The position numbers and the translations under genes are program-made. Positions 24,192 through 64,000 of a stretch of 64,000 nucleotides of DNA are shown here, piece after piece (the stretch's first letter is position 1; each line of letters opens with the position of its first letter). The notes beneath the pieces are model-generated. The model saw only the letters and a program-made list of their open reading frames with translations, was not told the origin of the DNA and did no database searches. The stretch comes from Eutreptiella sp. 'Long Island Sound 2002'. Lineage: Eukaryota; Protista; Euglenida. The stretch covers positions 175,708,001-175,772,000 of the forward strand of contig OZ038378.1 of the NCBI GenBank assembly GCA_964036045.1, in the 5' to 3' direction.

Positions 24192-27100
24192 ATGAAGCGG
24201 AGCATTCGTCGGTCTCTCGCTACATCCCTCTTCTTCTCGGTACGAAAAATCTGACCTCCCCTGCCTTCACAACGGTTTTCGAGAAAAGGCCCAACGTGTG
24301 TGCAGGCGCCATCCAAATTCGAAGGTCCCAAATACCTAGCTTTCAAGCAACTCGTCCAAGGTGTTCTCGAAGATGCGGACAAGAAGCTTGCGACGTCACC
24401 CATGTCACCTCATGAACGACGCGTGTTCGGGATCGTTTTGCCACGCCCAGACGCTCGTCAACTCACGATGCAACCAACCCTGCAGCCGTCGATAACGTCA
24501 ACCACAAATGCGTATTTGAGGGCCATGCAGACGTTCATCTCTAAAGAGGAGCAAGTGTGTTCCCCAAGCGCGCCCTCGTGGTGTGTGTGGGATGGTGGGG
24601 GGTAACCGTGCCTATTGACGAGACTGGTGCACACGAGTCTCAATCGTGCTGCCTCGTGCGCAAACACCGTCCTACACACGTCCTTTTTCATCATAGATGA
24701 AGGTATCGAGATCTATTGATGAGTTTCTCAAGCCTGGTGGCGAAGGTGAGACGTTGTCCAAGCACTACCTAGACAACGCCAACGACGGCACCTGGTTCGA
24801 TAGGTGCGTGCGCGCGCTGCTCAACCGCCCATCGAGCGCGCAAGGGCATCAATCCAATGTGCGTCGCATCGGCCCATTCGTCACCAAGAGGGTATCCGCG
24901 TTTGACGCGCGTGTGTAAGTCTGTGCCACACACGTGCCTAGGACCACAGAGTGTGTGATGCATCATGTTGCCGTCATCTTGCCCGAGACTACGCTAGTTG
25001 CGCGTTGCTGTGCATGTGTCTTTGCAGGATCAATCTCGATCGACAGCTGGAACAACGGCATTCGCTCTTCTTGAGCGGCAGCCCAGTGATCCTACTCAAC
25101 CCCGACCCTGTTGCGTCACGGAACACGCAGCTTGAAAGGGCTGCCAAGCTGTGCTCAGCCATGCTGAACGTCAAGGTGTCATCAGCCTATGCCCCACAAA
25201 TACGAGCCGGGGATTTCTCTCTTTCAACACGGGGGTAACCCTTCGGGGGCAGTTGGATTGTTCCGGCATCCTGTCAGAGATTTGCACACACCATGTGTGA
25301 TTCCCATTGCGATTGATAACACACAAGTGGTTAGCCTCCGTCATTTCTTGTCTCCATTGATGGTTTTAACCAGAACAGTTTATGCTGCTCGTTACTCGGC
25401 GGGTAAGTTACCTTCGACCTCGGGAGCCATGCAGCGTGCACGCGGTGGGCCCATCCTTGCTCCCAGGTGGCCGTGGATCACGCTGAAGGCCTCCCAGGCA
25501 AGCGCAATGAGCGAGTGCGTGGATTCCAATGCTCCCCGATGCTGTTCAATTGCACGCAGACCCCGGGCGTGGACAAGGACAGCCTGAGCATCCATCACCG
25601 CAGCGGCCATATCTCGGTGGCGTACAACGATTTGTGGTGGTATTTCACGGCCATGCACCAGCACGACGGCAAACCGCACAGCACGTGCGAGGTGTGCTTT
25701 AAGGGGGTGCTTACCACGCCAGTTCCGCCAGGTCACACTTTGTGCGAGTGCACCTGGAGCCATGGACTACTTGCATGAGCACAGAGTGCCGCTGCGTTCT
25801 GGACGCTGCCTGGGTCCGGGGTGCGGGCTCTTGGCATATGCGTGGGGCGCAGGGGGATCGAGTTCAACCAACGAACACGTCAGTGCCCCCCCCCCCCCCC
25901 CCCCTAAAGGAATGGCAGCTGCTGTTACGCCTGGGGGAGTCGAGACTGCATCGCTGTTTGCGCTCCTGTAGAGCCGCGGGGCACTCCGCCATGGCAGAGT
26001 GTTTGCGCTCCGCACTGAAGAGTGTTGCCACGTGGACCCATAATGCGTTGGTGCCGCGACCCGCCACCGATGGAGAAACGGAAACGGTGGGCCAACACAG
26101 CGGCTTGGTGGATCTTCGTCAGTGGCGAGATGTCGATTGACGCCGCCAACTGCCAGGAGAGCAGCAACAGCTCAGGGCTTTGTCCCAAGCCTCCCCCTTC
26201 CCTCCAAGACAGCCATTGTCTCACCACTCGCCCCAACGTCATTGACCTTTTGTGCAGAATGGACCCCACCAATACTACCAACATTAGTCCTCCTGCCGGA
26301 ATCGATGATTGTGCCCCAGCCCCCTTTGGACCCTTCAGAACGAAAAGGGAGGAAGTCCCCCGGCCCCCAGGGACTCAGACCCAGGGGGAGCAGAGTGGGA
26401 GCAGGGGTCCCTTGTCCAGCGTGTGAGGGAAAGGCTAAGGGCGGTTGGGCTGTGGGATTTCCCCCCCACGACCACTTCATGCGCGCCCCCATCGAAGAGG
26501 CGAAGGCAGGGAAAGAAGGGAAGGGGAGGGAGGCCCGAGGAAGGGCGGGTCGCTGACGCTCGTGCCCCGGAGGGCCATCAATACATCAGTTCCGTCGTCA
26601 TCACCATCTGGATCATCATCCTCCTCCTGATCTTTATCACGATCGTCTTCAGGCCCAGTTTGAAGTGATGAACCAGACGTACGGAAAGCCTGTGTTGGCC
26701 TTGCACTTTTCATAAGGAGGAGGGTCGCCCCTCCCCTTTTCAACCAGACACCAGCCCTCCTCCACCTCCTTTGAAGCGCCCACCCCGACCCCCCCCGCAG
26801 AATAAATCCATGGCGTTCATTTCCAGCAACGGACGTTTGGGTTTGTGTCTCTGCAGATCGAAGACACGCTGCTGGCCTTGACGCAGGCCACGTCGCCGTG
26901 GGCGAACCGCACCTTGAGCCAGCTCATCGGAGGGGACGAGTCGCCCCCTGAACCGAACTCCGATGGGTCCCCCATGCTGGAGCCCGCCGCCGCGGGGCCA
27001 GAGGCGGATCGTGAGGCCACGCGCAGTGCGGAGCCGCTGAGCCCGGACAGCAGCGACGGCCGGCCGGACGCCTTTGGTCGGAAGGAGGTCAGCGCGGGGA

Positions 27101-30100
27101 CGTGCCTCGCATTGATGAGCGGCGAAGACCCAAGTCCCGCGATCGGGTCGCTGACGTGGCTTGCCCGAGACAAATGGGCCAAGGTCCGGAATCAGATGCT
27201 GGAGTTCCCGACAACAGCGCGCAGCCTGGACCGCATCGAGTCCTCCATCTTCACGCTCGTCCTCAGCCCCGAGTCCCCCGAGCCCGGGTCGCTGGAGGCG
27301 ATGCGGGTCATCGCGCATGGGACGGGGCGAGACCGCTGGGGGGACAAGGCGCTGACGCTGGTGGTGTGCGCGAACGGCGTTGCGGGCCTCGCAGGGAACG
27401 CGCTGGCGTACGACTACCAGCAGCTGCATGCGCTGGCCACGCAGGTCTGGCACGCCTCGAACAACGATGAGTCTGTGGCGGCGGACCGAGCAGAACGTAT
27501 CGAGCGCAGAGAGCGGTGCTGTGGTGCTTTGCAGGGGCGGTCCGTTCGGGGGTTCGGTTTGGTTGTCCGACCGCCGAAATGCATATCACTGGGGATCTGG
27601 CGAAGATGGTTGCGTTGTTTTCCGAATGGGCCTTGTCTAGGCATAGAATCTTCGTCTGACCGTCGTTTTTGCTGATTTCGCGCGTTCTTCCGCAGGGGGG
27701 CAGGGTATACCATTCCGCAGCCGAAATGATCCCTCAAAATGGACCTTTCTACATGAACTCAACATTGCACTGGGACCCCTGGCGTCATGATATTTTGCCC
27801 CTTTTTGTGCGTTGAGTTTTGTGTTTGACCTCTGACATCAAGCTCCCCCAACAATGGAGCCCGGTCGACCACGCCCCCTGGGCAGGATTTTGAGGCCTGC
27901 TCTGGGGATGAACGTTCACTGGCATTTGACGCCCGTTCGGCAATACAAATTGAAGTCGTCGACCTTCGTCATATCTCGTGTTCGGTGTTCATGGATGAGG
28001 TGGAGCGCAGCCTGCAGATCCATTCGCCTTCAGCCGCTCTTCGTCCAACCAATGCGTTGGCCTGGGTGGCTTGTCCATTGGCACATTCAGCGCACCGGGC
28101 CTGCGAGGGAAACATCTTGAGATCGGGGGAGGGGGGGGGGGGGGCATCGGAGCAAGGCGCCTGCACCTGCATTCCTGGAACAAGTTGAGCTGTGCAAAGA
28201 TTGCGTCAACTCACAGGCATTCCAGGGCTGACGTAATGCTGTTGTGTGGCTGTGCGTGGCGCCGGGTGGATTTCCCATAAAATAAAGATAAGAAAAAATG
28301 TTTGCGCAAGTGCGGCCGGAGTAGCCCAGACCTGGCGGACCAGCCTCTGAGTTGCCTTTTTACTGTTGCTCCGACCGCGATGCAGCATGTCGGCTGGCAC
28401 CCTCTGCCCCAGCACCACAGGAAGAGTGAGTTCCTGCGTCACACTCCCGACAAACATGAAGGAAGCCGCGTGTTTTCGCCAGTAAGTCACCATCATGGGT
28501 CGCGGGCCCATTTGTGGGCAGCAGATACTTTTCATAGGACCTCCACAAGCCGTTCTCCCTGCGGAACAAACACGTCTCGAACGGTGGATCCTCCAGTAAT
28601 CTGCAGCAATCTCCAGAAACCTCCAGCAATTTTCCGCAACCCGCAAAAATCCTCAAAAACCTCCAGTGCAACCCCCAGCAATGTTCGGCAACCTCCGGTG
28701 CAACCCTCTGACGCCTGATTCCAGAGAAAAAATAAATTTCTGAGACTTTTTTTTCAATCAATTTTAATGCCACAAGTACCTCGAAACCCCCCCCCCCATT
28801 TCAAGGGTTGGAGGAAAATGGGTTGCATCACACTTCGAGGGCAATTTGGATCACATACAAATGAAACAACATACTAGGACATCGCGCGCATTCTTGTCTG
28901 CACCTACAAAAAAATTTTCCTCTTTACGCGCACGTGTTTGATGCTTCTCACCCGCACTTCCTCTCTAGAGTGCAGAGACAGAAAGAGCAAAAGAAGGAGG
29001 AGGAGAGGCGACGGGAGGAGGAGAGAAGACGGGAGGAAGAGAGGCGAGAGCGCGAAGCAGAGGCCGAGGTTGAGGCGCAGAAGGGCAAAAAGGGGGCGAA
29101 GGGCAAGCCTAGCAAGCCCCCAGCCCCGCCCAAGAAGGGTGACGGGCTGCTGCCGCCGGGCCGCACCAGCATCGTATCGGCAGTAAGCGCCTACCATGAC
29201 GGGCTGCAGATGTTCAATTCGCAGCAGTCCGTCGTCGAGGAGGAAATTGAGGTTGCTGTGCCCCGTGGTCTGCGTCTCGGAGTTCTTGTCCCGCGAATCC
29301 TCTTTCCCTCGCGAGCAAGCCCGCTTTGTCGCCGATTCCGCCAGACCTCGAGGATTCGGGTTGAGAACGAGAAAGAAAGCCCCAACGGGCATTGTCCGGT
29401 TGAAGGGGGAAGTATCGGTTGTTGTGTACTGATGAATGGCGAAACAGAGGCCAGTGACGAAACACCAGCTATCACCGGCGGCTGAATGGCGAAACAACGA
29501 CAGATCCTCACTGAGCTCCAAGAGGCGCAGCATTGCAAGCTGGTAAAACAAGCGGTGGAGTAGCGAAGTGACGGTCATGGTTTTTCCGGGACGCAGGTTA
29601 CTTTATTCTCGGGCCCCATGTCTAAGGACAGCCTGAACCGCACGCGGTCGGCGCGCTCAACAAGCGCCCTTCTGGATTTTCCATCCCGCACGCAGTCCTT
29701 TTGCTGCTGCGCATTCTCTTGTGATGCTGCAATCTGCACCTGCATGTTTTTGCGCTGCGGCAATCCCCCGCTCCATCCCTCTGAAGAGGTGACACCTAAA
29801 GGGGGGTGGAGGGGGCGGGCCCACGCCTCCTCAGCGGTAAGTTGCAGTCAACCGGCAACAGTTGGTGGTCAACCGACACCTGCAGTATCACAAGAGCATG
29901 TGCACACAGACTACAGAAGAGGGCACATAGCGCAAGAGCTGGGTGTCCCTCCTGACGCAAGGCTGCAACAACAGGCCCGAGGACTGCAGCGCTCTGATGC
30001 ATAGCCCCCCTCCCTCACCTGTGCCCTTGTGCTTTCCAACCCCCTTCGGTGAGTAGTGAGCACCCACTGAACCTCACGGCTGGTTTGGGATGCATGTGAG

Positions 30101-43182: not shown

Positions 43183-43937
43183 GGGGGCGCCCTTAGCGCA
43201 GTGCGGGCGCAGTGCAACTATTTGGGCATCTAGCCGTACTGGAGACCCATACTTTGTGATACTAGGGGCATCATTGTTGCCCCTAGCATAGGTTTTGATG
43301 CTTCTTCCACATGGGGGGTATGGCATTTTTGGATTTTCACCAACTTTCACCCATTTCTACCCCTTTTCACAATTTTTTTGCTCATCTTCACCATGGACTC
43401 CCACACTTTGGTATGGGCCCTTGAGTTGGGGTGATGGACTCCCATGCTTTGGTGTGGCCCCTCGAGTTGACGTGACGGACTGCCCGGTTTTTGCTTGACC
43501 ACAGTCGAATGCCCTATGCGAGGCCGCATCCCTGCTGATGAGAAAGCATGGTTGTACCACAAGTTGAAAACAGAGGTTGACGTGGATTCCCTCCTGCAAG
43601 AAACTTTGCCCCCCGGTCCAGTTGAGGATGGGGTGGGCACATACGCGGCTTTGGAACTAGCTGGTAGGGTGAGTGAGCTTTCAATTGAACAAAAAAGAGG
43701 ATATGTGCGTGGCTTTCAGCATTTTGCATGATGTCTTATATAAAGGGAAGGTAGCTTGCATGTGTCTTGAGCTCGGGTAGTTTGAGTGACTGGAATTTAG
43801 GGGCATTTGGGTAGCTAGGGTGGCCTAATTTTGAGGGTGTTTGGACGGGGTTGGCATGGGGGTTCTTCACAGGGGAATCTAGTCTAAAAGTAGCGCGCAG
43901 TGCGCGCGACGTGCGCGCGCACTGCAAGGGTTCCCCC
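43183..43937. mobile_element. Non-autonomous TIR element, 3-bp TSD (PIF/Harbinger-like), copy A
   Basis: Imperfect TIRs GGGGGCGCCCTT... / ...AAGGGTTCCCCC with TGG on both flanks. The first ~180 bp and last ~115 bp are homologous to 56047-56773. Confidence 0.75.
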
Positions 43938-45903
43938 TGGGTACACCGCCACCCATCCCGTGATTCCACAAAGTGGAAGTCAAACTGCCCATTTTATGTG
44001 AGACATCCGAGGCAACAATTGGGTGCATGCACTAGCCAAATTGGGGACCCGTGCCCATATACACCGGAGATTCACTCGCGGGCATCTGCCTACAAGGCAC
44101 CGAGGCCCCCACACCGGCAAAAAAGTGGATCAGCTCAGTTTTCCTGGGTGTGCATTGGGCTACATGGCTACATCTATGCGGAATCGGGTGCTTGCTGTGG
44201 CTCCAATGGACCTGGGGCAATGTGCAACGGTTGGGACGCGGGTCCACCGTGGGAGAAGTCCTTGATCAAGTGCACGCTATGACGTAAGTGGAACTCTAGC
44301 ACCCTACGTGGGAGGCCGGTCCAATGCTAGTAGTGGCGCGACGTGTTCCTACGCGAATGGGTGAAGATATGGGGTCCATGTGAATTCTATGCCACAGCTT
44401 GGATGGCCTTGGCAACCGCGGAAGAAATGCTACGCATCGCTAATCACCGAGCTAAACCGTAGCCTTTTGCCCAGGGGACGAGGGGACGGTCATGTACTGT
44501 CCCAAACCATGTGTTTCAAGTGCCGAACAATGTCGAACACTTGTCAATGGTTTCGGACGGAACAAAAAAAACGTACGCATCACTAAGCTCCGCATTCCAC
44601 AAACCTCAGTGGCGAGGTACCAGGTGCAAGGACAAAAATGCTCCACTGCGTGCTCCGGTCAACGCGGGTCCTTTGTGCACTGTTTTGGCTTTGGCGGTGG
44701 CCTGGGGTGGCGGTGTCGGGTTTTTTGTGCGTTTTGCTCGACCAGCCGCCCCCCCAAGTAGGGTGCAGGGCTATGATGCCAGACCAACTCTGTGGCAGTG
44801 GCGCATGAGCGCTACGCCTTATTGCAACATTCGTTGTACCCCCCCCCCCCCACGAGTTCTTTGCCCTGGTGCCGTTTCCATGAGGGGAAGGCGAGTGATG
44901 GCTGTGCATCCGATTGAGAGCTAGTTTTGCATTTTATTTTTTGGTCACTTTATATTGCTGCAGGCCTAGGGCCTGCCCTTAGGGCTTTTGTCAAAGCGCT
45001 ATTGCCTAGAGCGCCAATTGCGTCGTGCTCTGCGCGCCTGCAAATGTGGCTGTTTCAAAGGGGGAGTGTTAGTGTGCCAGGCACGCTCAAGGCGCGCGCC
45101 GGGCATCTTGTTTTGACCATTCCCCACCCGTGCTTGTTTTTGCCCCCCCTCACTAAACAATGTGGAGAACCTTCTCGGCGTGTCTAAGAATCTGGCCCAT
45201 CCTTTGCACCCAATTTATGACGATGGCAAGGGTGGTGGTTGGAAGTGGTGGGAGTGATGTTTTGTGTTGTTGAATTCTCATATTTGGGCTTATGCAAGGT
45301 GCCTTGAATGAAAGGTTTGAGTCAACTGCGGTCTACTTGGGGGAGCGGCACGCATTGTGCGCGCACAGTGCATGCACCCTGCATCTTTTTTATTTAGATA
45401 ATTTACTTGACGCCATTGTTTGTCGTACCGCCGTGAGGAGCCGTGTTGCTGAGCTGGTGCCCTATTTCACCCTGCATGCCTTGAGGACTGCATTGTACAT
45501 GCTATCCCTTGGTCAATAGCAACACAATGTCTTTGTCTTGGGTTTGAGCCGTACCCCTATCTTCTACAACCATAGTTGTGCAAATGAGCAGGATCCCGCT
45601 ACTATTCTGGGTCCCTCGCAACACCCGGTAATTACCTACGCATTCAATATGAAGTGAATGGGAAGGTGGTGATTCATGATGTTGCTTCGCTGCACCGCGT
45701 CGAGTTCCACATTCGAAGCACATCCCCATCACCTTGAACGTCTTCCAAACCTGAACTTGATGGTCAAGGCACACCTGGGAACTTGATGAACCGCATGCTT
45801 CCATGGATGGCGAGGATGCTTCCCTGTGGATATCTATATGTTGTACATCAATCATTTTGTGTGTACAATGCAGATTCAATTTGGGGTGCAAGAAACTCAT
45901 GTA

Positions 45904-48430: not shown

Positions 48431-49170
48431 GACTTCCCCACGGGGAGGTGGCACGCCGTCGAGTTTAAATTATGCTTGTTTGTCATGTGCTCTGCGTGTC
48501 TGTGGGTATTATTGCTAAAATGCTCAGTCCTTTGGGCAGGTTGCAGTGGTTGTCTAGGCACACATTACTGGCCTGTTTCATGCTATGTGCCTACCACACG
48601 GTGTACAAGGGTATAGGTCGCTTTGATAGGTCACTCATTAGAGCAATAGCTCCAGTCCTCATGTTCGCACTCACTCTGAAGGTGTCATGGCATATGAAGG
48701 CATAATGTGTGTAACTTCAGGGCGGCCACCAGCTGCCCAAGGATTTGAATGCGCATGTTTCCGACTTGACTGATCTCACTTTGTTTTGTACCGAAAGGCT
48801 GACGAGTTATCAGCCTAACAGATTTTGGTTTCATGCAATAATGTGCATGTGGGCACAACAGGAAACCCCCTGCTGCAGGTGAGGAAAATGACAGCTTTCC
48901 TTCAGGGTTATTGGTCTGTGTGTTGGAAACTCTACCTCAATATGTGTGAATCCTGCCTTCCTTTGTATAGTTCACTGCGGATCTATTCGGGGTCATTTTA
49001 TATCACCACACAATCACCAAGCTACACTCGTGCACAAGTCCCGGGAAACATAGGCATCCTGAGCCCCAGGAACCGGACAAGGGGGGTACGTGGGTTGGTG
49101 CATCCTGAAGGCATTATGGTTGCTTCATTTTTGCTTGCTTTGTTATCCCTCTACAAGATTTTGCATCAGT

Positions 49171-52100
49171 ATGGCCAGGATTTTAGCCGCCGATGACGAC
49201 CGGCAATCGATTTGGAAGGCATTTCGGTTCAAATCTCCTGACAAGGAGGAGCTTTTTGTCAAGAGATATGAGTCGTCATTGGTGGGCGCCCTCCAGATCT
49301 GGTGTCTGACCCATTTATTCTTCGCGGTCACCATCCCCTGCACCTTCATCCCTTGGCAAGTCGCCTGGGGCTTCTACTTGGCATACGTGCCAAACGCTGT
49401 GATTGCCGCAGTGGCCTTTTGCTCAGTGACGTTTATTCCACGTGCCTTGAAGTACACTCCCCTCATCATAAGTGTTGCAGTTTTCCTGATGACCATGGCC
49501 TCTGCCTTGACCGTACACTTGCATACCCAAGTATGGTTGCAGCACGCATACAGCACTGGCCTTGATTTGGTTGTCCCCCTCGTGAACACCCCACAGGCGA
49601 AGGCTCAACTAGACTGGTATTTGAGAGATAAAGTCAGTGCTTCCGTTCTGAACGCGCTCTTGGCCTTCCAAATGCCGCAAATGATGCTGCTGGCATTCGT
49701 GGGGTTGTATCAGAGTACCACTGTGGCCACCATCTTGATGCCTGTCGGCTTCATTCTTACAGTGGTGTTGTCGCCGGAGGTGCCCATCACGGTTGTGTTG
49801 CTCAGAGGTGCAACCTTCATCATCTTTGCATCGTTTTTGTTGGCTATCATGACAAGTGTCACCATTGGTCGACGCCACTCCTTTTCCATGGAGCGGTTCT
49901 CCGAGGCCTCCTTGCGGCAGTCGGTGGAAGCTTCCAGGGCATTGGAGGTCGCGACGGAGGCGTCCCGAAAGGCCGACAGCATTTTGAATCACACTCTGAA
50001 AAATACAATGGCTGATGCAGCCGGGGAGATCGATTTGTTTTTGGAGAACGGCCCATGCGACGAAGTCGCGTGTGCTCCGCTCCGTCAATCCGTTGCATCT
50101 CTCCGCAGAGGCATGAGGTCGTGCCGCCACCGCCAAGCATACTTGCAGCTCGTGGCCCACCAATACACTCCATCACTGCAACCAGTGGGGCTAGTCAATT
50201 TTGTCAACGACCTCACCGCAGGACGACACATGAAACTGGACGTGAAGGATTTCACGGCGTGCTTTGATGCGACGTTATGCAGCCTCATTTTGGACAATGC
50301 TATTAGCAACGCGTTCAAGCACGGTCATCCGAAGACTCCCAACGTTCAACTGACCATCAAGGACGTCCTACCCGAAAGCGGACCTCGTTCACTACCGGAG
50401 CCGGCCGTCCGACTGAAGTTCATCATCACCAATGATATCAACCCAGCCAGACCCAAGATCACGGAGGATTATGTCAACAAGGTGCTGTATGGGCGGGTGG
50501 GCGAAGGCACACCCCTTCCCGGCGGCAGCACCGGCAACTGCCGATGGGACAGCAAACGACAACCGCTTTACCCCCTCCACAATGCCCCCCCCCCCCCCCC
50601 CCGGAGGTTTAGGCCTGATGATTCCTGTTGGACATCTGCTCTGTGGATCAGCTGCGAGAATTGCCGCGCGTTGCTTCATGTGCGTACCAGGATGTGCATG
50701 TGTCCAGCGTTTTGCCGTGCATGCGGCCAGAGGTTTCAGCGTTCGTGCCACAGACCAGAAAGGCTTATTGCCCCCTCCGACACCATCTGACCGTGATGAC
50801 TGGAAGTACCATGTCTAATCCGGTGTGACGTTCCTGTTCGTCTGTGTTGGTGGGAACCCTCGCAACTGCTGCGGTTGATCCTGAAAGGAGCAGCATATGG
50901 GCTGCTGCTGAGCATATGGCATGAGCTGTGTTGCTTTCCTGTGCGGCTTGTTCTGATAAGAGCTTGTGTGCAGCCATTCTGCTGTGCCATTGTTGCCTCG
51001 TTCCTGGTTGGTGAGGTCTATTTTTCTTGGCCTTTCCTCCATGGTTCATCAGCGCCGTCCCGACTACAACCACCATTTTGACTGTTTTGCATGATGTCTG
51101 ACAATTCAGAAGTTCTTGTTTATTGTCGCAGGCTTGTGTTGGCTAAAAGCTCTCCTAAATATCACTGGGAAACCGTATTTGGTTGGCATTTAACTGGGTG
51201 CCATCAGCCGACAAATGGCTGCACCTCGGATAGGTGCAAAGCTAGGGCTGACGCGTGTAGACACGCAGGAGGAAGAAATGTGCAGGGAAGTAGGCTCATG
51301 GCTGAGAAACAGAATGGCGCTTGTTGTTTTAAGGCCACATGCAGGCGGCACCCATTCCAATTGAGTGCATCTCCACAACCCTCCCACACCCTCAGGTGCT
51401 GAGTGGCAAGGCTCGACCCGCGACCTCTGCGTTGTCAGACCGCATTGGCTTGCAGCATTCCTTCTTGGCGGCAGAAGCCCAAGGCATGTTGGTGTCCCTC
51501 ACGCAACAAGGCGGAAAGGTAGTCTTTGAGGCAGAACTGGATGTGGAGGTTGTGGCCAGCCAGGCTGAGGCCAAAAACACGCAGCTTGAGGAGGACCTGA
51601 CGAGGTTCCCCCAGGGCTTGGCCATCTACTGTATTGATGACTCCGCTTCGGCCCGACGGCTGCTGCACCACAATTTGATTACTTGGGCCAACACGACCAA
51701 CGTGCATATGTTTGGGCGAGACGAGCTCGAAGTGAGCCGGTTCACGAGCGCTGCACTGGCAAACGCCGATATCGCAATCCTGGACCAACATCTTGAATAT
51801 GGGGGGGAGACCAACATCTTGGGAACGGATCTGGTGGCGCAGCTCGTCGAAGGTGAGTTCCAAGGGCTCATCTGCATGCGGTCCGCAAACGTAGCAAAGC
51901 ACGACCGAACCAAATATGCCCAAGCAGGAGCGCACTGCACGTTTGGGAAGGATGTGCTCATGAAGCAGATGGTGCAGGAGATGAAGGCGGCGTACGTGCG
52001 GTGCATTGTGAACAGCACGTCGGCGTGCTCAGATTGTCTTACCACGGCCGAGGATGACGCGGATTTCCCAACGTTGAACCCGGGGGAGCCTTCGGATTTA

Positions 52101-52181
52101 TGGGTTCAGCCCCTGGATTCTGCCCCGCGACCCACGTCACCCCGTCAAGTGGCCTACCAGATGCAAGTACTGTCGCCGTAG
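49171..52181 (+). CDS. Multi-TM hybrid sensor histidine kinase-response regulator (~698 aa; exons 49171-50481 and 51396-52181)
   Basis: About 6 TM helices, H-box ADSILNHTLKNT, N-box LILDNAISNAFKHG and degenerate G2 box SDRIGL. The receiver has CIDDS, ILDQHL, MRSAN and FGKD. A phase-0 GT-AG intron joins the two track ORFs. Confidence 0.9.
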
Positions 52182-54353
52182 CCGTCTGTTTGAATTTGAA
52201 GAGCTTTGGAGCAAGTCCTTGTCGACTGCTGGGCGATGTTTTTTGTATTTCGGCAACGCCTCAAGAGCCGTGTGGTCCCTATCCACCCCCCGAACCCCTA
52301 CCCCACCGGAGGATGATGCAGCCACACGGGGGTCCTTGCGCTGCTGGCTCTATGTGCTGTGGTGTTGGTGCCGTGTGGACGGCGGCGTACTGCCGGCCAC
52401 ACATTTTTGCACGTCGATCGCAGGGATCGCGCTCGCCATACCCATTGCACTGCCACCGGTCAATGGTACATGGTGACGTCTGAGAAAGCAACCTTGTGCG
52501 TCAGGTGGTCATGTGACGTTATGACGGGGGACTGCCCCCTTTTGCATGATGTGCGCGCTGATTTACACTTTGAGGCTGGATGTGTGGGTGGGGACTGCGT
52601 TTGGGGTTTCTAGCCTCCGGCAGCTTTTTGCCGTTGCAACGCAGCCCTTTAAAAGAATGGATTAATGCGCCAACTCACTGCCATGCTCGGGGACCGCTAC
52701 CCAATCCTGCTAAAGTATTGCCTGAGGTGGATACGCTGTGCCCGATTGTGGACTTGTGAGCTTTTCCTCCTGCAGAGTTCGGGTGTGTCGCTGGCAACTC
52801 TGTTGCACACAATGCGCCAAACCTGCGACGTCACACCGCAGGCGTTTGATTCCCGGTTTCTCAAGGTCGCAAATTTTTTTCATCTCGACATTTGCTCCTG
52901 TACAGAAAGTTCGCTGAGTCTGCAGTCATTTGCAACGAAGTCTGCTGTCAAACAGGACAGACCTACCCTCAGGTGATCATGTACTCTGGCCCGGCCCTCA
53001 CCCTGGTTCAAAGTGACAAGTGCACTTTTCGTTCAACCCAACAGATGTAGCACAGATCATCTTGCTCTGATTAATTTGCGACTGATTTCTGATTTGACCA
53101 TCAGAGATTCTTCTTCCTGATACAATGATCTGATTTGGCTTGGGCGCAGCAGTGGTATACTGCAATGCTATGCATCAGATATTATGTTTGACCATATGCT
53201 CCTGGCATTTGGTATTCTGCAATGGGCCTACCATTGAATGGAGCATGTGGTGTGCGCGACTGATATAGCCCTTCCCAGGTGCGATAATGTAATCTACTTT
53301 GTACAACCGCTGCTTTCAAGGACAAAGTACCGTCTCCTGCTCGATTGACTGGGCTGTTTGGATATGAACCATCTGCGTTTCAATTGGTCCGGGCACCGAA
53401 CTTTGTTTTTTTTTTTCTGTTAGTGGCTTTGGTCGGCTGGTATTCAAACGAAGGTGCCTGAAAGCCCTCGGCAGCCTCGTGCAGATCAAGAAGATGGGTT
53501 TGGAGCACCAATCGGGTGCCCAAAGATTACTTGGCAGAAGGTTGGGGTGTTGGGGTCGGTAGCTGCAGGTTTCAATTGTACAATAGCAAGAGCCGGACCT
53601 TAGCTTTGCGGAGGAGGAGGTTTCCACTACAGTGTGCCCCCCTGCCAAGCTGTGCCTTATTGTATCTTGCCCGCCACACCGTGAGGTTTTACGCCAGCTC
53701 CTGATTATCTCCCTCCGTCCATCTTTGGGTTATCGGTGAGGGTGCCGCCCGCGCGGTGCGCACGGTGCGAACAGTTCACTCAGGCATTCGTGGACGGCTG
53801 CATCCATGAGCCCTGATGTGCATGTCGCGCTGCAAGTCACCACGTCGCTCCGTTTCAAGGCCTGGTGCCATGTTCAGCAGCATGGCGTCACAACCCGGGA
53901 TACTTGAAGAACGTAGTGTGCGTGGTGCGCGCGGTGCGCGGGCGGCACCCGTTGTGCTACTCCGTATCTTCCCAATCCTGCCCTGACCCCCCCGGATTCC
54001 TTTGCGTATCACTGAAGCTGCCTCTTGATGTACTCCACCTGTCTGTACCACCACGGATTGGCGTATCATGAACATTGGTACTGAATCCATCTGCTATGTG
54101 GGGCAAGACTAGGGCGCGTAGGTGGCACTCCTGTTGGACCCCATCTGTATTGTGCTTGAACAATCTTTCACTGGGGCATGGGCATAGGGAGTGTGAGGCA
54201 CAGGGACTGGCAGGAAAGACAGGCTTGGCGTGTAGTCATTGACTCATGCGACTGAGCGTGTGACTGATCCTGTGCAACCAGCTCTGATGCTCATGGCTGT
54301 TTCCCTGGAGAGTGCAACTTGCCAAGGTATCAGAAAAAAAGGACATGAGGACT

Positions 54354-54587
54354 ACAGTCATTGTGCCTCATGCACGCTGGGAAGCCTGCAGGCCTGGCAG
54401 TCTCCCACTGCATAACCTGGTTTCAAACTCAGCTAATCCTCACTGCGTGTTAGATCCGCTACCACAGTCATTTGTGGGATCATCGTAGCACTGGACAGCT
54501 CTGAACCTTGATCCTGAGGGGTTACCTCGAGTACTGTGACGCGAGCAGGCTACGCCAGCTCATCTTGGTCTGAGCCAAAAAAAAAAA
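54354..54587 (+). mobile_element. 5'-truncated poly(A) retroposon, copy 1
   Basis: Ends in A11. GGACATGAGGACT flanks both sides (54341-54353, preceded by A7, and 54588-54600). Homologous to copies 2 and 3. Confidence 0.85.
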
Positions 54588-54761: not shown

Positions 54762-54927
54762 TTTCAGACTCAGCTAATCCTCACTACGTGTCAGATCCGC
54801 TACCACAGTCATTTGTGGGATCATCATAGCACTGGACAGCTCTGAACCTTGATTCCGAGAGGTTGTCTTGAGTACCATATGATGAACAGGGTACGTCAGC
54901 TCACCTTGGCCTGGACCAAAAAAAAAA
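54762..54927 (+). mobile_element. 5'-truncated poly(A) retroposon, copy 2
   Basis: Ends in A10. A 26-bp direct repeat flanks it (54736-54761 and 54928-54953, 3 mismatches). Confidence 0.85.
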
Positions 54928-56046: not shown

Positions 56047-56773
56047 GGGGGCGCCTTAAGCGCAGTGCGCGCGCAGTGCAACTATTTGGGCGTTTGGTTG
56101 TAGTAGAAACCCATACTTTGTGGTACTTTGGGCATCATTGTTGTTTGATAGTAGGTTTTGATGCATTGGGGATCTGGCATTTTTGGATGTTCGCCCTGTT
56201 TCACCCATTTCTACTTTTTTGCACACATTTTCCCCCCATTTCCACCACATCTACTCTTTTTGACGGTTGATTGACATGGTGATACACTTTGAGGGTGCCT
56301 GCTACGGGACATCATACTTCCCTCCTCATTTCTCAGGCCCACTTTCTCCATGGATCTCAGTTTTGGGGGTAGGGTGTTCTACACCCGCTCCAATGGCCTG
56401 CGACCTCCTGCCACGGTGGTTGGGACGGCTGAAGACGGACTCCTCCACTTGGAATACTACCAAGATGGGTTGAGAGTGGTGAATTGGCAATGCAAGAAGG
56501 AGTCCATCTCCTTTGCCATCCCAAGTTCAGACTCGCCACCTGACTACCCTCCATCTCCGCCGCCCAACACACAGTCAAAAGCCCCCCCCCCCTTGTTTCA
56601 CCACTGCCACAAGGACCGGGAAGGTCCCCCTCAAGGTCCCCTCCAGTCCAGTTTGGGTCGCCTAATTCTAAGGGTGTTTCCGAGGGGCGTGCCTAGGGGC
56701 TCTTCGGGGGGAACATAGTCTAACAGTAGCGCGCAGTGCGCACGCAGTGTGCGCGCAGTGCAAGGATTCCCCC
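56047..56773. mobile_element. Non-autonomous TIR element, 3-bp TSD (PIF/Harbinger-like), copy B, carrying a short ORF
   Basis: TAT|GGGGGCGCCTT ... AAGGATTCCCCC|TAT. The ends are homologous to 43183-43937. Confidence 0.8.
56350..56718 (+). CDS. Short ORF inside element B: small beta-barrel-like N-terminus plus Pro/Ser tail
   Basis: MDLSFGGRVFYTRSNGLRPPATVVGTAEDGLLHLEYYQDGLRVVN has an SH3/Tudor-like strand pattern. There is a possible frameshift in the C11 run at 56582. Confidence 0.4.
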   Translation: MDLSFGGRVFYTRSNGLRPPATVVGTAEDGLLHLEYYQDGLRVVNWQCKKESISFAIPSSDSPPDYPPSPPPNTQSKAPPPLFHHCHKDREGPPQGPLQSSLGRLILRVFPRGVPRGSSGGT

Positions 56774-58694
56774 TATCACAAGGTGCGCCGCGCTAAAAGA
56801 CGACGTGATAGTGATGTGAGTTCCTCCACATCATCATCAGACTCTAGCACCTCAGGTTATAGTGACAGCACAAGTTCAAACTCTTCAAATTTGTCTGTCA
56901 GTTCTGACAGTGATTCAGAGGGCAGCACGGACCTTGCCTGTGAAGTCGAGGAACGCGCCAGAAGTGTTGCAACGACATTGGCGCAAGATAAACAGCAACC
57001 CGTGTCACAGCCACCCCCTGAGACACTTGAAGGACCAGCGGTTGCAACCTCAGCACCAATGGACCATCTGTGGGATTGGGTTTTGGCATCAGCACCTAAT
57101 TCAGTCAAAAAATATCATGAAAAGCTGAGGTGTAATGGCTTTGACACTGTCTGTGCCATCACTTTGCTTCGTCCAGAAGATTTCCAGAGATATGACATGC
57201 CTTTTGGACACCGTGCTCAGTTGGTCCATCATGCCAAGGAGACCTGAGGATTGAAGTAAAGAAAGTCAGTGTGCGGCCCATCTTCTTGCTTTGTTGCGTT
57301 GGGGTATGCATCTTGTGGTTAATGGTTTTCTGGATTGCTTACGATGGGTTTACAACGGAATATTCGTCGCTAGGGACAACACTGCCCCACCCCCTGTTGC
57401 ACAAGCACAGCCTTGTCTAAGTACGACGACCGTGGCCGTGGCTCCGCCGCGTTTGCTGGACATACGAACAGTGATTTCCTGCCGGTGGGATACCGGGGAT
57501 GGCGGCCATCGTCGGATTATGGCTGAGCATGACGGCCCTATGTTACTATTACTTTTGGGATGCCAATTTCGTGGTCCAGAGTCTCACATCACAAGAATCG
57601 TTGTGCTTTGGTGCAAGCCATTTTGCTTGGTTTTCCTGTGGTTTGGCGGGGTATCGCATATGTACTGTGCATCCCTGGCAGCCTGGGGTCTCCACGCCTT
57701 TTTTTTCCAGATAGTTGTGTACTGCTTGACAATGTACAGCCCACTAAGGCATGATTGTGCTTCATACCATACCATATGTCCTGCGCTGCACCAATGTGTG
57801 CTGTATCACACCATGTTCCATCAGATCCACCTCTGCTAATTTCCAGAAGGAGCATGTGAGGTGACTCCTCATTAGACTTGCATGTTGCGAGCAGTTGGTG
57901 CCCCCCCTTAAATCTCCTGCGCCACTGGTATCCACAGGGCATATAGGTCCCCCGTCACGTTCTGAAGGACCCGAGAGAAGTTTCAATCATTGTAGGAGGT
58001 TTTTTTTTTGCAAGATTGGCATGATTTTAATTTGTGCCATGCACTTAATTCGGACAGGACCTGTGGCCATGAGGCATACTCTGGTCATCTTTCTTCCTCA
58101 ATTAATGGCATTTTTGTCGGCAGTGCAGAGCGGGGGCGAGAAAAGAATTGGTCAGCAAATGAGGTTTATGCTGCCTCACAGACAGTGATATTTGATCAGT
58201 TTTGGACCATGCTTCTGCCGTGGAGGCTCTCACTCCCTTGTGGGTTGGTACTTCAAGCGTACAAGATGTAGCCTCCTGCAAAGGTTTCCTGGCCTCCAAC
58301 AACACATATCTCAACCATGTCCAGAGGATGCAGATGACCAGTTGTTGGGTGCAGGTCTAGGACAAGAGATAGCATCGTTTTTGGTTTGCAAAAGTGCAGA
58401 CTACTCTTTTGCTTACCAATCTGTTTATCCGTGTGTCAGCACTTTGGCGGTCGGCCCCGGATGCGGCTTCGCACAGTTTCTGCCTCTCAACCCTCTCATT
58501 TTCCATTTGTGGTGCACATTCTCATGTATTTTGTCACTTTTTGTGGGTGCAATGCAAGCTTCAGACATTTGGGGACAGTGCTGTTGTTGTTTATGCTGGT
58601 TCTTTGATACAATATATACTATGCCCCCCCCCCCCCCCCTCTATATCTTTGTTTGTGCCCCAGAATGCGAAAACTGAAACTAAAAGTCATCCCC

Positions 58695-62885: not shown

Positions 62886-64000
62886 ATGGAGGGCCCAGGA
62901 GGTCAAGGAGTCATTGAGGAAGAAGTGGAGTATGAGTCCTCGGATGATGATGAGCCCATCAAGCAACAACGGGTAGGAACCGAGGCAATGCAACGGCCGC
63001 AGTACCAAACCCCGCAATTTGTTAAGCAAATAGACAAGATGACCCGGGACAAGCTTGGTGAAAAACAAAAGATGGTGAGACCTGATTTTGTAGTGCCCTA
63101 CACCAACCTCAATACCAACATGCGTAATCATCCCTTATTGTATGTGGCTCCAATGATCTATGTGTGGGATCCCCCAAGTCAATATGGTGTTCAAGTGAAG
63201 TGTCAAGGAGGTGATCACAAGATGCACTTGAACCAATGGCGTGATTGTTTGGCATATGATCTAGGCGGGCCCGTGTACCTTCGGAGGAGATTTTTGAAAT
63301 GCCAAAAGGCCACTTGCAAGGTCGAACCCAAGACAATGACCGTTCGGGCGGAAGGACTAGAATTTTATCCTTTTCTACACACCGCCAAGCGCGCGTTCAC
63401 GAAGCGCTTGAGCGACTTCGTGATCGCGGCTTGCGTGAACGGGACGCCACTCTCCAAGATTCAACAAGATATATTGGAAACCCAAAGGCAAGAGTGGTTG
63501 AGGAAAAAGTTGGAGTTCCAAATGAACTTCACAATGACTCAAACAGAAGGGGAACGCCGCGCAATTTTCTTGGGCCAAGAAATCCCGTATCCGGAATTTA
63601 TCAAGTTCGAAGATTACATGTACGTCCCATGCCGTGCATTAATCAAAGAAATTATTTTACAACATTGGGAGCGGTACAAATATTTCTACTTTTGGCACAT
63701 GGCAATGATGGGTGCTGACAAGTGTTCGGCGGACATGACATTCAAAAGGGCTAAATTCATCGTCACCAAGCAAGGAAAATGTTATGCACCCCAATGGAAA
63801 GGAGTTTACCAAATCCTCAACGAAGCCGGCATGGTCATTAGTTGGGCATTCACTCGAACACAAGCCACCCAAGTGTCACAAGTATGTAGGTGAATCCTTA
63901 CGGTGTTTGTTTTCTTCTACATCATCATGTAACAATGTTTGTTGGTTTGCATTAGGTGGAAGAAGTTGCCGCGCGGCCCAATGTGCAAAGCAATTTGGAG
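62886..64000 (+). CDS. MULE-like DDE transposase, 3'-incomplete (exon 62886-63881, intron 63882-63955, exon 63956->64000)
   Basis: 332-codon exon with IYVWDP, C...C/H zinc-finger-like residues, YPFLHT, CSADMTFK (first catalytic Asp, DxTFK type) and ILNEAG. A GT-AG intron follows and the frame stays open to the window edge. Confidence 0.7.

Follow-up and report, generated by a model that had tools for sequence, protein, structure and literature searches.

We describe a gene at positions 49171-52181 of a 64,000-nucleotide (nt) window from the euglenid Eutreptiella sp. 'Long Island Sound 2002' (GenBank assembly GCA_964036045.1, contig OZ038378.1, positions 175,708,001 to 175,772,000 of the forward strand), which is intact, transcribed and spliced, and whose product joins a six-transmembrane (6TM) module directly to a histidine-kinase core and a C-terminal receiver domain. 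We consider it probable (roughly 0.6) that the protein acts as a dimeric hybrid histidine-kinase receptor in the membrane and signals through a ligand-gated His-Asp-His phosphorelay. The predicted elements of such a receptor are its dimerisation, the sensing of a ligand, autophosphorylation together with the nucleotide used for it, and the route of the relay. The 6TM sensor would respond to a ligand that is probably membrane-associated, the catalytic (CA) domain would phosphorylate His274 in the dimerisation and histidine phosphotransfer (DHp) domain, and the phosphoryl group would move from His274 to Asp567 in the receiver (REC) of the same protein and from there, through a small histidine-containing phosphotransfer (HPt) protein, to response regulators. 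Because TM6 is continuous with the first helix of DHp, a shift of TM6 within the membrane would be passed straight to His274. The proposal draws on the structure, transcription and splicing of the gene, on three folds, on motif conservation and family size, and on the presence of HPt genes in the same genome.

A preliminary description of this gene had called it a hybrid histidine kinase, and modelling of the kinase core bears this out. The core was modelled with AlphaFold2 (AF2) and 28 family sequences; since an intronless paralogue that is 44% identical to the window protein (P0003) stood in for the latter, the statement about the CA fold rests on this relative. The P0003 model reaches a predicted local distance difference test (pLDDT) score of 87 and begins with two helices (residues 2-52 and 60-86) carrying His33. 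Foldseek returned 262 matches at E<=0.001 in the PDB, and the 50 listed were all histidine kinases or their relatives at a probability of 1.0, with RetS, ZraS, phytochromes, HK853 and ChpT near the top. Structural alignment with VIA-align placed HK853 at Z 16.4 (root-mean-square deviation (rmsd) 2.7 Å over 156 residues) and 351 chains at Z>=8. These models support both a DHp hairpin with a conserved histidine and a Bergerat-fold CA domain with an N-box. In AF2 models His274, the putative phospho-acceptor of the H-box, lies about 36-40 residues past the membrane exit, with the helix unbroken in between.

Conservation across the family points in the same direction. Invariance was counted in an alignment of 37 family rows, and Pfam was scanned over 38 aligned rows of relatives. 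The phospho-histidine motif NHTLKN, the N-box and the receiver residues DD, D, S and K named in the preliminary description were all recovered, and their conservation goes well beyond chance: the His, Lys and Asn of the H-box, both asparagines and the glycine of the N-box, and the receiver residues are invariant in 37/37 rows. The N-box also gives a profile match to that of YycG (E 0.02). At the C-terminus, all five key receiver residues are kept throughout, and Pfam Response_reg is matched by 18/38 family rows (best E 1.4e-7), the match of exon 2 of the window gene itself, at E 0.002, lying below the cut-off.

Several properties of the kinase core weigh against a working kinase of the textbook kind. 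The unusual G1 (TNDINP) and G2 (SDRIGL) boxes noted at the outset prove to be family-wide: in place of DxGxG at G1 the family has N-x-A-N-P, with the asparagine invariant in 37/37 rows and a glycine-free loop that is 4 residues longer, and in place of GxGxGL at G2 it has S-D-x-I-G-L-Q-H, in which the final G-L alone is retained. Most of the glycines of the two boxes are gone throughout the family, and the residue after the H-box histidine is threonine rather than glutamate or aspartate. In GHKL ATPases, a change of Asp to Asn at the G1 position usually abolishes ATP binding. Neither HisKA, HisKA_2, HisKA_3 nor HWE_HK was matched in Pfam at E<=0.1 by any of the 38 family rows, and HATPase_c was matched by 17/38 rows with a best E of 4e-4, no member being shown at the curated cut-off. 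Pfam found no match in exon 1, and phmmer searches of each exon against the PDB gave noise only. The H-x-x-K-N form of the H-box resembles that of HisKA_2/HWE histidine kinases; membership in that group was considered but is supported neither by the Pfam result nor by the structural ranking, in which EL346 (Z 13.9) is no closer than HisKA-type kinases.

The equivalence of the altered boxes could be followed against a canonical hybrid kinase encoded in this genome. In hhalign, the two align in the N-box and in the helix that follows G1, with the 4 additional residues falling in the G1 loop, and by strand register F-A-V-H-D of the canonical kinase would correspond to F-T-V-I-N here, which places Asn421 at the position of the aspartate; the strand in question comprises residues 172-182 of the kinase-core model. 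As the G1 and G2 changes are invariant across the family, they are a family trait and not decay of the window copy, and the invariance of the altered positions together with that of the N-box argues for a working nucleotide pocket. Since the pocket is remodelled in every member (Asn for Asp, a longer glycine-free G1 loop, Thr after His), its chemistry may differ from that of textbook kinases.

The same features could be explained if the CA domain no longer autophosphorylates and the protein instead serves as a node for phosphotransfer or phosphatase activity under control of the sensor, in the manner of ChpT, Spo0B or RetS, with His274 and Asp567 acting as relay sites for phosphoryl groups from canonical kinases. 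This explanation, which we judge somewhat unlikely, accounts for the loss of the G1 aspartate, the glycine-poor lid and the absence of an acidic residue after the histidine, and it agrees with the Foldseek ranking, in which RetS occupies ranks 1-5, plant phytochrome A appears, and ChpT has the highest identity listed (17-18%). A supply of phosphoryl groups could come from the canonical kinases of the genome, where at least 109 canonical HisKA matches were found. Against it stands the perfect conservation of the N-box, whose asparagine holds the Mg-nucleotide. Moreover, the residues by which G1 and G2 depart from the canonical boxes (N, NP, RP, S, G, H) vary little or not at all among sequences that are merely 30-50% identical, which indicates a pocket kept under selection rather than one in decay. 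By textbook rules the pocket conserved in this family would count as dead, which bears on whether the adenine-binding aspartate of GHKL proteins can be replaced.

The N-terminal module was modelled from the window protein itself (residues 1-255, AF2 with 28 family sequences) at a pLDDT of 94.6 and a predicted TM-score (pTM) of 0.88. The model has six transmembrane helices joined by short loops, a helical extracytoplasmic hairpin between TM3 and TM4, and a TM6 that continues as a single helix toward the DHp domain, with HAMP and PAS domains absent between the two. Given the position of the cytoplasmic kinase, both ends of the module would be cytoplasmic. The invariant residues of the sensor lie solely at its cytoplasmic face (a glutamate before TM1, an arginine and a phenylalanine at the exit of TM6), which suggests a conserved coupling device.

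Foldseek with the 6TM model found nothing in the PDB at E<=0.001 apart from GPCR-like noise above that threshold, and for this reason an exhaustive VIA-align search was made over 48,161 representative PDB chains. The first rank was taken by ImcA (8wcn), a 6TM-GGDEF homodimer (Z 15.0, rmsd 3.8 Å, 215 of 255 residues aligned), followed by bovine adenylate cyclase 9 (AC9, 6r3q; Z 12.3, rmsd 3.1 Å, 193 aligned) and human adenylate cyclase 5 (AC5, 8sl3; Z 11.4, rmsd 3.4 Å, 207 aligned). Designed helical proteins occupy the ranks from 4 onward at Z 9.4 and below, and Rv1625c (7yzi) stands at rank 10 (Z 8.2, rmsd 4.7 Å, 156 aligned). A hidden Markov model (HMM) of the whole family matches residues 89-311 of AC9, its TM1 region, at E 1e-3, with the alignment in register from the motif before TM1 through the R..F after TM6. 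A shape search of the ESM Atlas returned clusters of bacterial 6TM Guanylate_cyc, GGDEF/EAL and MASE8 proteins with TM-scores of 0.67-0.73 over about 215 residues.

These comparisons support the view that the modelled 6TM module has the fold of the membrane anchors of dimeric nucleotide cyclases, as a remote likeness at the level of the fold. The preliminary description had compared the N-terminus to adenylate-cyclase membrane clusters; that comparison stands for the fold, given the AC9 profile match, the top three VIA-align ranks and the ESM Atlas clusters, and falls short in that the sequence evidence is weak and the fold is common to diguanylate cyclases too, so that it is not specific to adenylate cyclases. 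The module is followed by DHp, CA and REC domains in place of a nucleotide cyclase catalytic domain. Its assignment to a known histidine-kinase sensor family, the outcome that would have spoken against the earlier comparison, was not borne out: Pfam found no significant sensor family in 28 sensor domains, the best being MASE8 at E 0.17 in one member. Also in the ESM Atlas, a ciliate cluster carries a similar 6TM module (TM-score 0.73) together with a Ser/Thr/Tyr protein kinase domain, and would be another eukaryotic reuse of the 6TM fold.

The likeness to cyclase anchors might nevertheless be convergent, reflecting a generic six-helix bundle with neither common ancestry nor a common signalling mechanism, a prospect we regard as unlikely. 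The Pfam and Foldseek results just given agree with convergence, and further points count on the same side: helical bundles can reach a Z of about 14 by chance in VIA-align, the AC9 profile match carries 7 bits of bias and is followed by plainly spurious transmembrane proteins at E 0.02-0.1, and a sensor HMM found nothing below E 0.01 among six-frame open reading frames (ORFs) from the 30 top-scoring class III cyclase loci of this genome and their 1.5-kb flanks, from which it follows that the module was not recently exchanged with those cyclases. On the other side, each of the top three among the 48,161 chains is the 6TM anchor of a dimeric nucleotide cyclase, and these lie 2-5.6 Z above the next rows, the ESM Atlas matches again lead to cyclases, GGDEF and MASE8 proteins, and the AC9 alignment spans the entire domain without losing register and takes in the cytoplasmic motifs that precede TM1 and follow TM6. 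It has long been asked what adenylate cyclases sense through their 6TM anchors, and under the reading as a receptor kinase the same fold would here be naturally wired to a different output.

The window gene belongs to a large paralogous family. A word search with exon 1 found 99 relative proteins, and those with an organism name or a recognised transcript prefix are all euglenid, Eutreptiella gymnastica included; the EG_transcript prefix we take to be Euglena gracilis and GGOE01 to be E. longa. Among such relatives the family has so far been seen in euglenids only. A transcript protein of E. gymnastica (P0010) has 93% identical intact frames in the assembly of the window. When the genome was searched with the kinase-core profile, 1023 first-look candidates were obtained, and the 150/150 loci that were scored all reached E<=5e-66, nearly all as uninterrupted frames of 650-830 amino acids (aa) that often stand in tandem arrays. 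The octapeptide ILNHTLKN, searched as a degenerate DNA pattern, occurs 168 times in the 2.28-Gb genome (vs 0 for the reversed control), and these counts point to at least about 170 paralogues of the window gene.

Mean pairwise identity within the family is 22% in the 6TM sensor, 50% in DHp, 42% in CA and 45% in REC. By these sequence comparisons the sensor evolves fastest, well ahead of the transmitter, as is typical of receptors whose ligand-binding region diversifies within a family. A fast-evolving 6TM domain in a huge paralogue family is what would be expected of ligand-binding receptors, and such proteins offer possible readouts for ligand screens. It is conceivable, if doubtful, that the 6TM module serves as a chemoreceptor repertoire, in which hundreds of fast-diverging paralogues would feed a His-Asp-His relay through a re-engineered pocket that perhaps uses a nucleotide other than ATP, such as GTP, or a different catalytic mechanism. 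If true, this would provide natural evidence for the 6TM fold as a ligand receptor, and no larger family of histidine kinases would be known from any eukaryote.

The genome also encodes candidates for the downstream steps of the relay. A search for HPt partners, as suggested with the preliminary description, yielded two loci over the Pfam cut-off with the motif AHSLKG (L001, 1321-1923 (-), and L002, 1312-1974 (-)), which are paralogous and encode proteins of about 200 aa. The L001 ORF begins with MGCGNS, and in the L002 ORF, which opens at an upstream GTG, 17 residues precede this sequence; MGCGNS resembles a myristoylation/palmitoylation signal, which would place the HPt relay protein at the membrane. 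When the window receiver was co-folded with one of the two HPt proteins, the interface score ipSAE was 0.43, vs 0.01 for the best control. The mark applied is reached by 51/78 solved complexes and 2/108 mismatched pairs, with passes at or below 0.60 being rare among true pairs (5/78), and the pass may be model memory because solved REC-HPt complexes exist; the co-fold lends weak support to the pairing. In addition to its canonical HisKA matches, the genome has at least 51 receiver proteins, and one locus on a chromosome-scale contig (L005, 1015-3312 (-)) encodes a canonical hybrid kinase with SHELRTPL, DTGAG, GTGLG and two receiver domains, which means that this euglenid also possesses textbook two-component proteins. 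A class III nucleotide cyclase family is present as well (554 first-look candidates, with 150/150 scored over the cut-off and many frames of 600-870 aa).

In the ORF listing the gene appears as two open plus-strand frames (49090-50790 and 51339-52181), bounded by an ATG at 49171 and a stop codon at 52179-52181, with no single ORF spanning both. The ends given in the preliminary description were correct; the intron between the two exons (50482-51395) had gone unstated. Splice-site dinucleotides are present at 50482 (GT) and 51394-51395 (AG), and joining 50481 to 51396 preserves the reading frame (...EDYVNK|VLSGKARP...) as in full-length homologues, which read ...DYVKKVLSGEARR... and similar across the same junction, to give a product of 437 + 261 = 698 residues. 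An RNA contig from an estuary metatranscriptome has exactly this splice, skipping 914 nt with GT..AG ends at 100% identity; 8 letters are common to both sides, so the cut can be moved by 2. RNA contigs from two metatranscriptomes span 49157-50479 and 51394-52387 with zero differences to the window, and none among them covers the intron, while a DNA-like run contains the whole stretch unspliced.

The intron borders carry an 8-nt perfect direct repeat, AGGTGCTG, at 50480-50492 and 51394-51406 (13 nt at 85%), as expected if the intron was gained by insertion with target duplication. An introner origin was considered and rejected, as the genome contains the complete intron once, with just two stretches of about 80 nt recurring elsewhere at about 80% identity. 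An intron in the CA domain is unusual for the family. At the 5' end, RNA contigs from two libraries both begin at 49157, after a pyrimidine tract and an AG, with 4 unaligned letters each; position 49157 is probably a spliced-leader addition site, with the mRNA body starting about 13 nt upstream of the ATG, and on that basis the ATG at 49171 would be the first of the mRNA.

That the window copy is a decaying or transposon-captured pseudogene is highly improbable: it is one of the few intron-split copies of the family and is flanked by elements resembling miniature inverted-repeat transposable elements (MITEs), but both frames are open, every family-invariant residue is kept, two environmental RNA libraries contain the spliced mRNA without a mismatch (100% identity), and the elements on either side are individual copies, in direct orientation, of a single short element rather than the ends of one enclosing element. 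The reading as transposon cargo was rejected on the grounds of the spliced RNA and of these separate copies. The MITE-like copies start with GGGGGCGCC... and end with ...TTCCCCCT, and the kinase gene lies between them. Downstream of the gene, a 166-nt direct repeat (54421-54586 and 54762-54927) is found at 86% identity with its copies 341 nt apart. Elsewhere in the window, an ORF piece at 26845-27675 (+) matches Pfam Carn_acyltransf at E 1.6e-21, and an ORF of 335 aa at 62886-63893 (+) has a weak match to DUF6729 at E 4.8e-4, below the cut-off. The features of the gene and of its surroundings are collected in Table 1.

Table 1 Features of the kinase gene and its flanking elements, in window coordinates.
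Feature	Position	Strand	Basis or remark
Pyrimidine-rich tract ending in AG (49156-49157), probable spliced-leader trans-splice acceptor	49118-49157	+	RNA ends; trans-splicing inferred
Exon 1, coding part, 437 aa: 6TM sensor, DHp, first 2/3 of CA	49171-50481	+	ORF listing, homologues, RNA contigs
Cytoplasmic pre-TM1 motif FRFKSPDKEELFVKRY, Glu invariant in family; aligns with AC9 pre-TM1 motif	49222-49269	+	Alignment, profile
Six TM helices, approximately residues 37-57, 66-88, 96-116, 159-178, 183-201, 210-232; membrane exit RRHSF	49276-49884	+	Hydropathy, AF2
H-box NHTLKN; putative phospho-acceptor His274, codon 49990-49992	49987-50004	+	H, K, N invariant, 37/37
N-box DNAISNAFKHGH, canonical	50293-50328	+	YycG profile match, hhalign; both Asn invariant
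G1-box equivalent TNDINPARP; Asn421 at Asp position by strand register	50428-50454	+	Residue equivalence inferred
Intron, 914 nt, GT-AG, between G1 and G2 boxes, inside CA/ATPase domain	50482-51395	+	Spliced RNA, homologue junction
Exon 2, coding part, 261 aa + stop: ATP lid/G2, CA end, linker, receiver, variable tail	51396-52181	+	ORF listing, homologues, RNA
G2-box equivalent SDRIGLQH	51435-51458	+	S, G invariant; L, H nearly
Receiver domain	51612-52040	+	Pfam Response_reg; five key residues invariant
Acidic pair D518/D519 (CIDDS)	51630-51644	+	Invariant in family
Phospho-acceptor D567 (ILDQHL)	51777-51794	+	Invariant in family
S600 (RSANV)	51879-51893	+	Invariant in family
K622 (FGKD)	51942-51953	+	Invariant in family
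3' untranslated region, at least to 52387	52182-52387	+	RNA contig 51529-52387
MITE-like direct copies, ~750 nt each	43183-43938 and 56047-56774		76-87% identical over matched pieces; ~12.85 kb apart

Among published work, one sentence in Ebenezer et al. 2019 (PMC6366073) mentions an expanded Euglena gracilis REC orthogroup with an 'H-ATPase domain', which, judging from the EG_transcript proteins among our matches, is very probably the same family as the window gene; neither the membrane module nor the altered motifs nor the copy number are treated in that report, and our literature search found no description of the membrane module or motif changes of the euglenid family. Kinetoplastids had been noted in the preliminary description as generally held to lack two-component systems, in agreement with Kabbara et al. 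2018, whose survey lists no histidine kinase in either Leishmania or T. brucei and does not sample euglenids. Against none in the Euglenozoa of that survey, the present genome holds at least about 170 genes of one family in addition to canonical kinases, HPt and receiver proteins, and its at least 168 H-box motifs lie far above the 0-51 histidine kinases per species given for a part of Table 1 of Kabbara et al. 2018.

With the hybrid sensor histidine kinases known from eukaryotes and bacteria (structural references HK853, CusS, YycG/WalK) the euglenid family shares the DHp hairpin with a central histidine, the CA fold, the N-box and a C-terminal receiver with DD, D, S and K, and HPt genes accompany it in the genome. 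It differs from them in having no HisKA-type match in Pfam and no HAMP, PAS, CHASE or GAF domain, and in the asparagine and longer glycine-free loop at G1, the SDxIGL form of G2 and the threonine after the histidine. With the anchors of class IIIa adenylate cyclases (AC9, AC5, Rv1625c) it shares six short transmembrane helices with cytoplasmic ends, an F..E..F/Y-type motif before TM1, an R..F exit after TM6 and a long helical continuation, whereas the output of the window protein is a histidine kinase rather than a cyclase and sequence identity is about 9%. ImcA of Pseudomonas aeruginosa, a homodimer of 6TM and GGDEF domains, is the best structural match, again with a different output domain, and MASE8-type sensors are approached in the GGDEF/MASE8 clusters of the ESM Atlas (TM-score 0.67-0.70), with Pfam MASE8 not significant.

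The quorum-sensing kinases CqsS and LqsS, compared here by description only, are of like design, in that a 6TM receptor without an extracellular domain leads directly to DHp. CqsS is bacterial and has a canonical H-box (Beltz et al. 2016), and in both respects the euglenid family differs from it. In the work of Beltz et al. 2016, the CqsS 6TM receptor was able to control a class IIIa cyclase and was shown to cluster with cyclase anchors, and this is the nearest precedent for the euglenid design.

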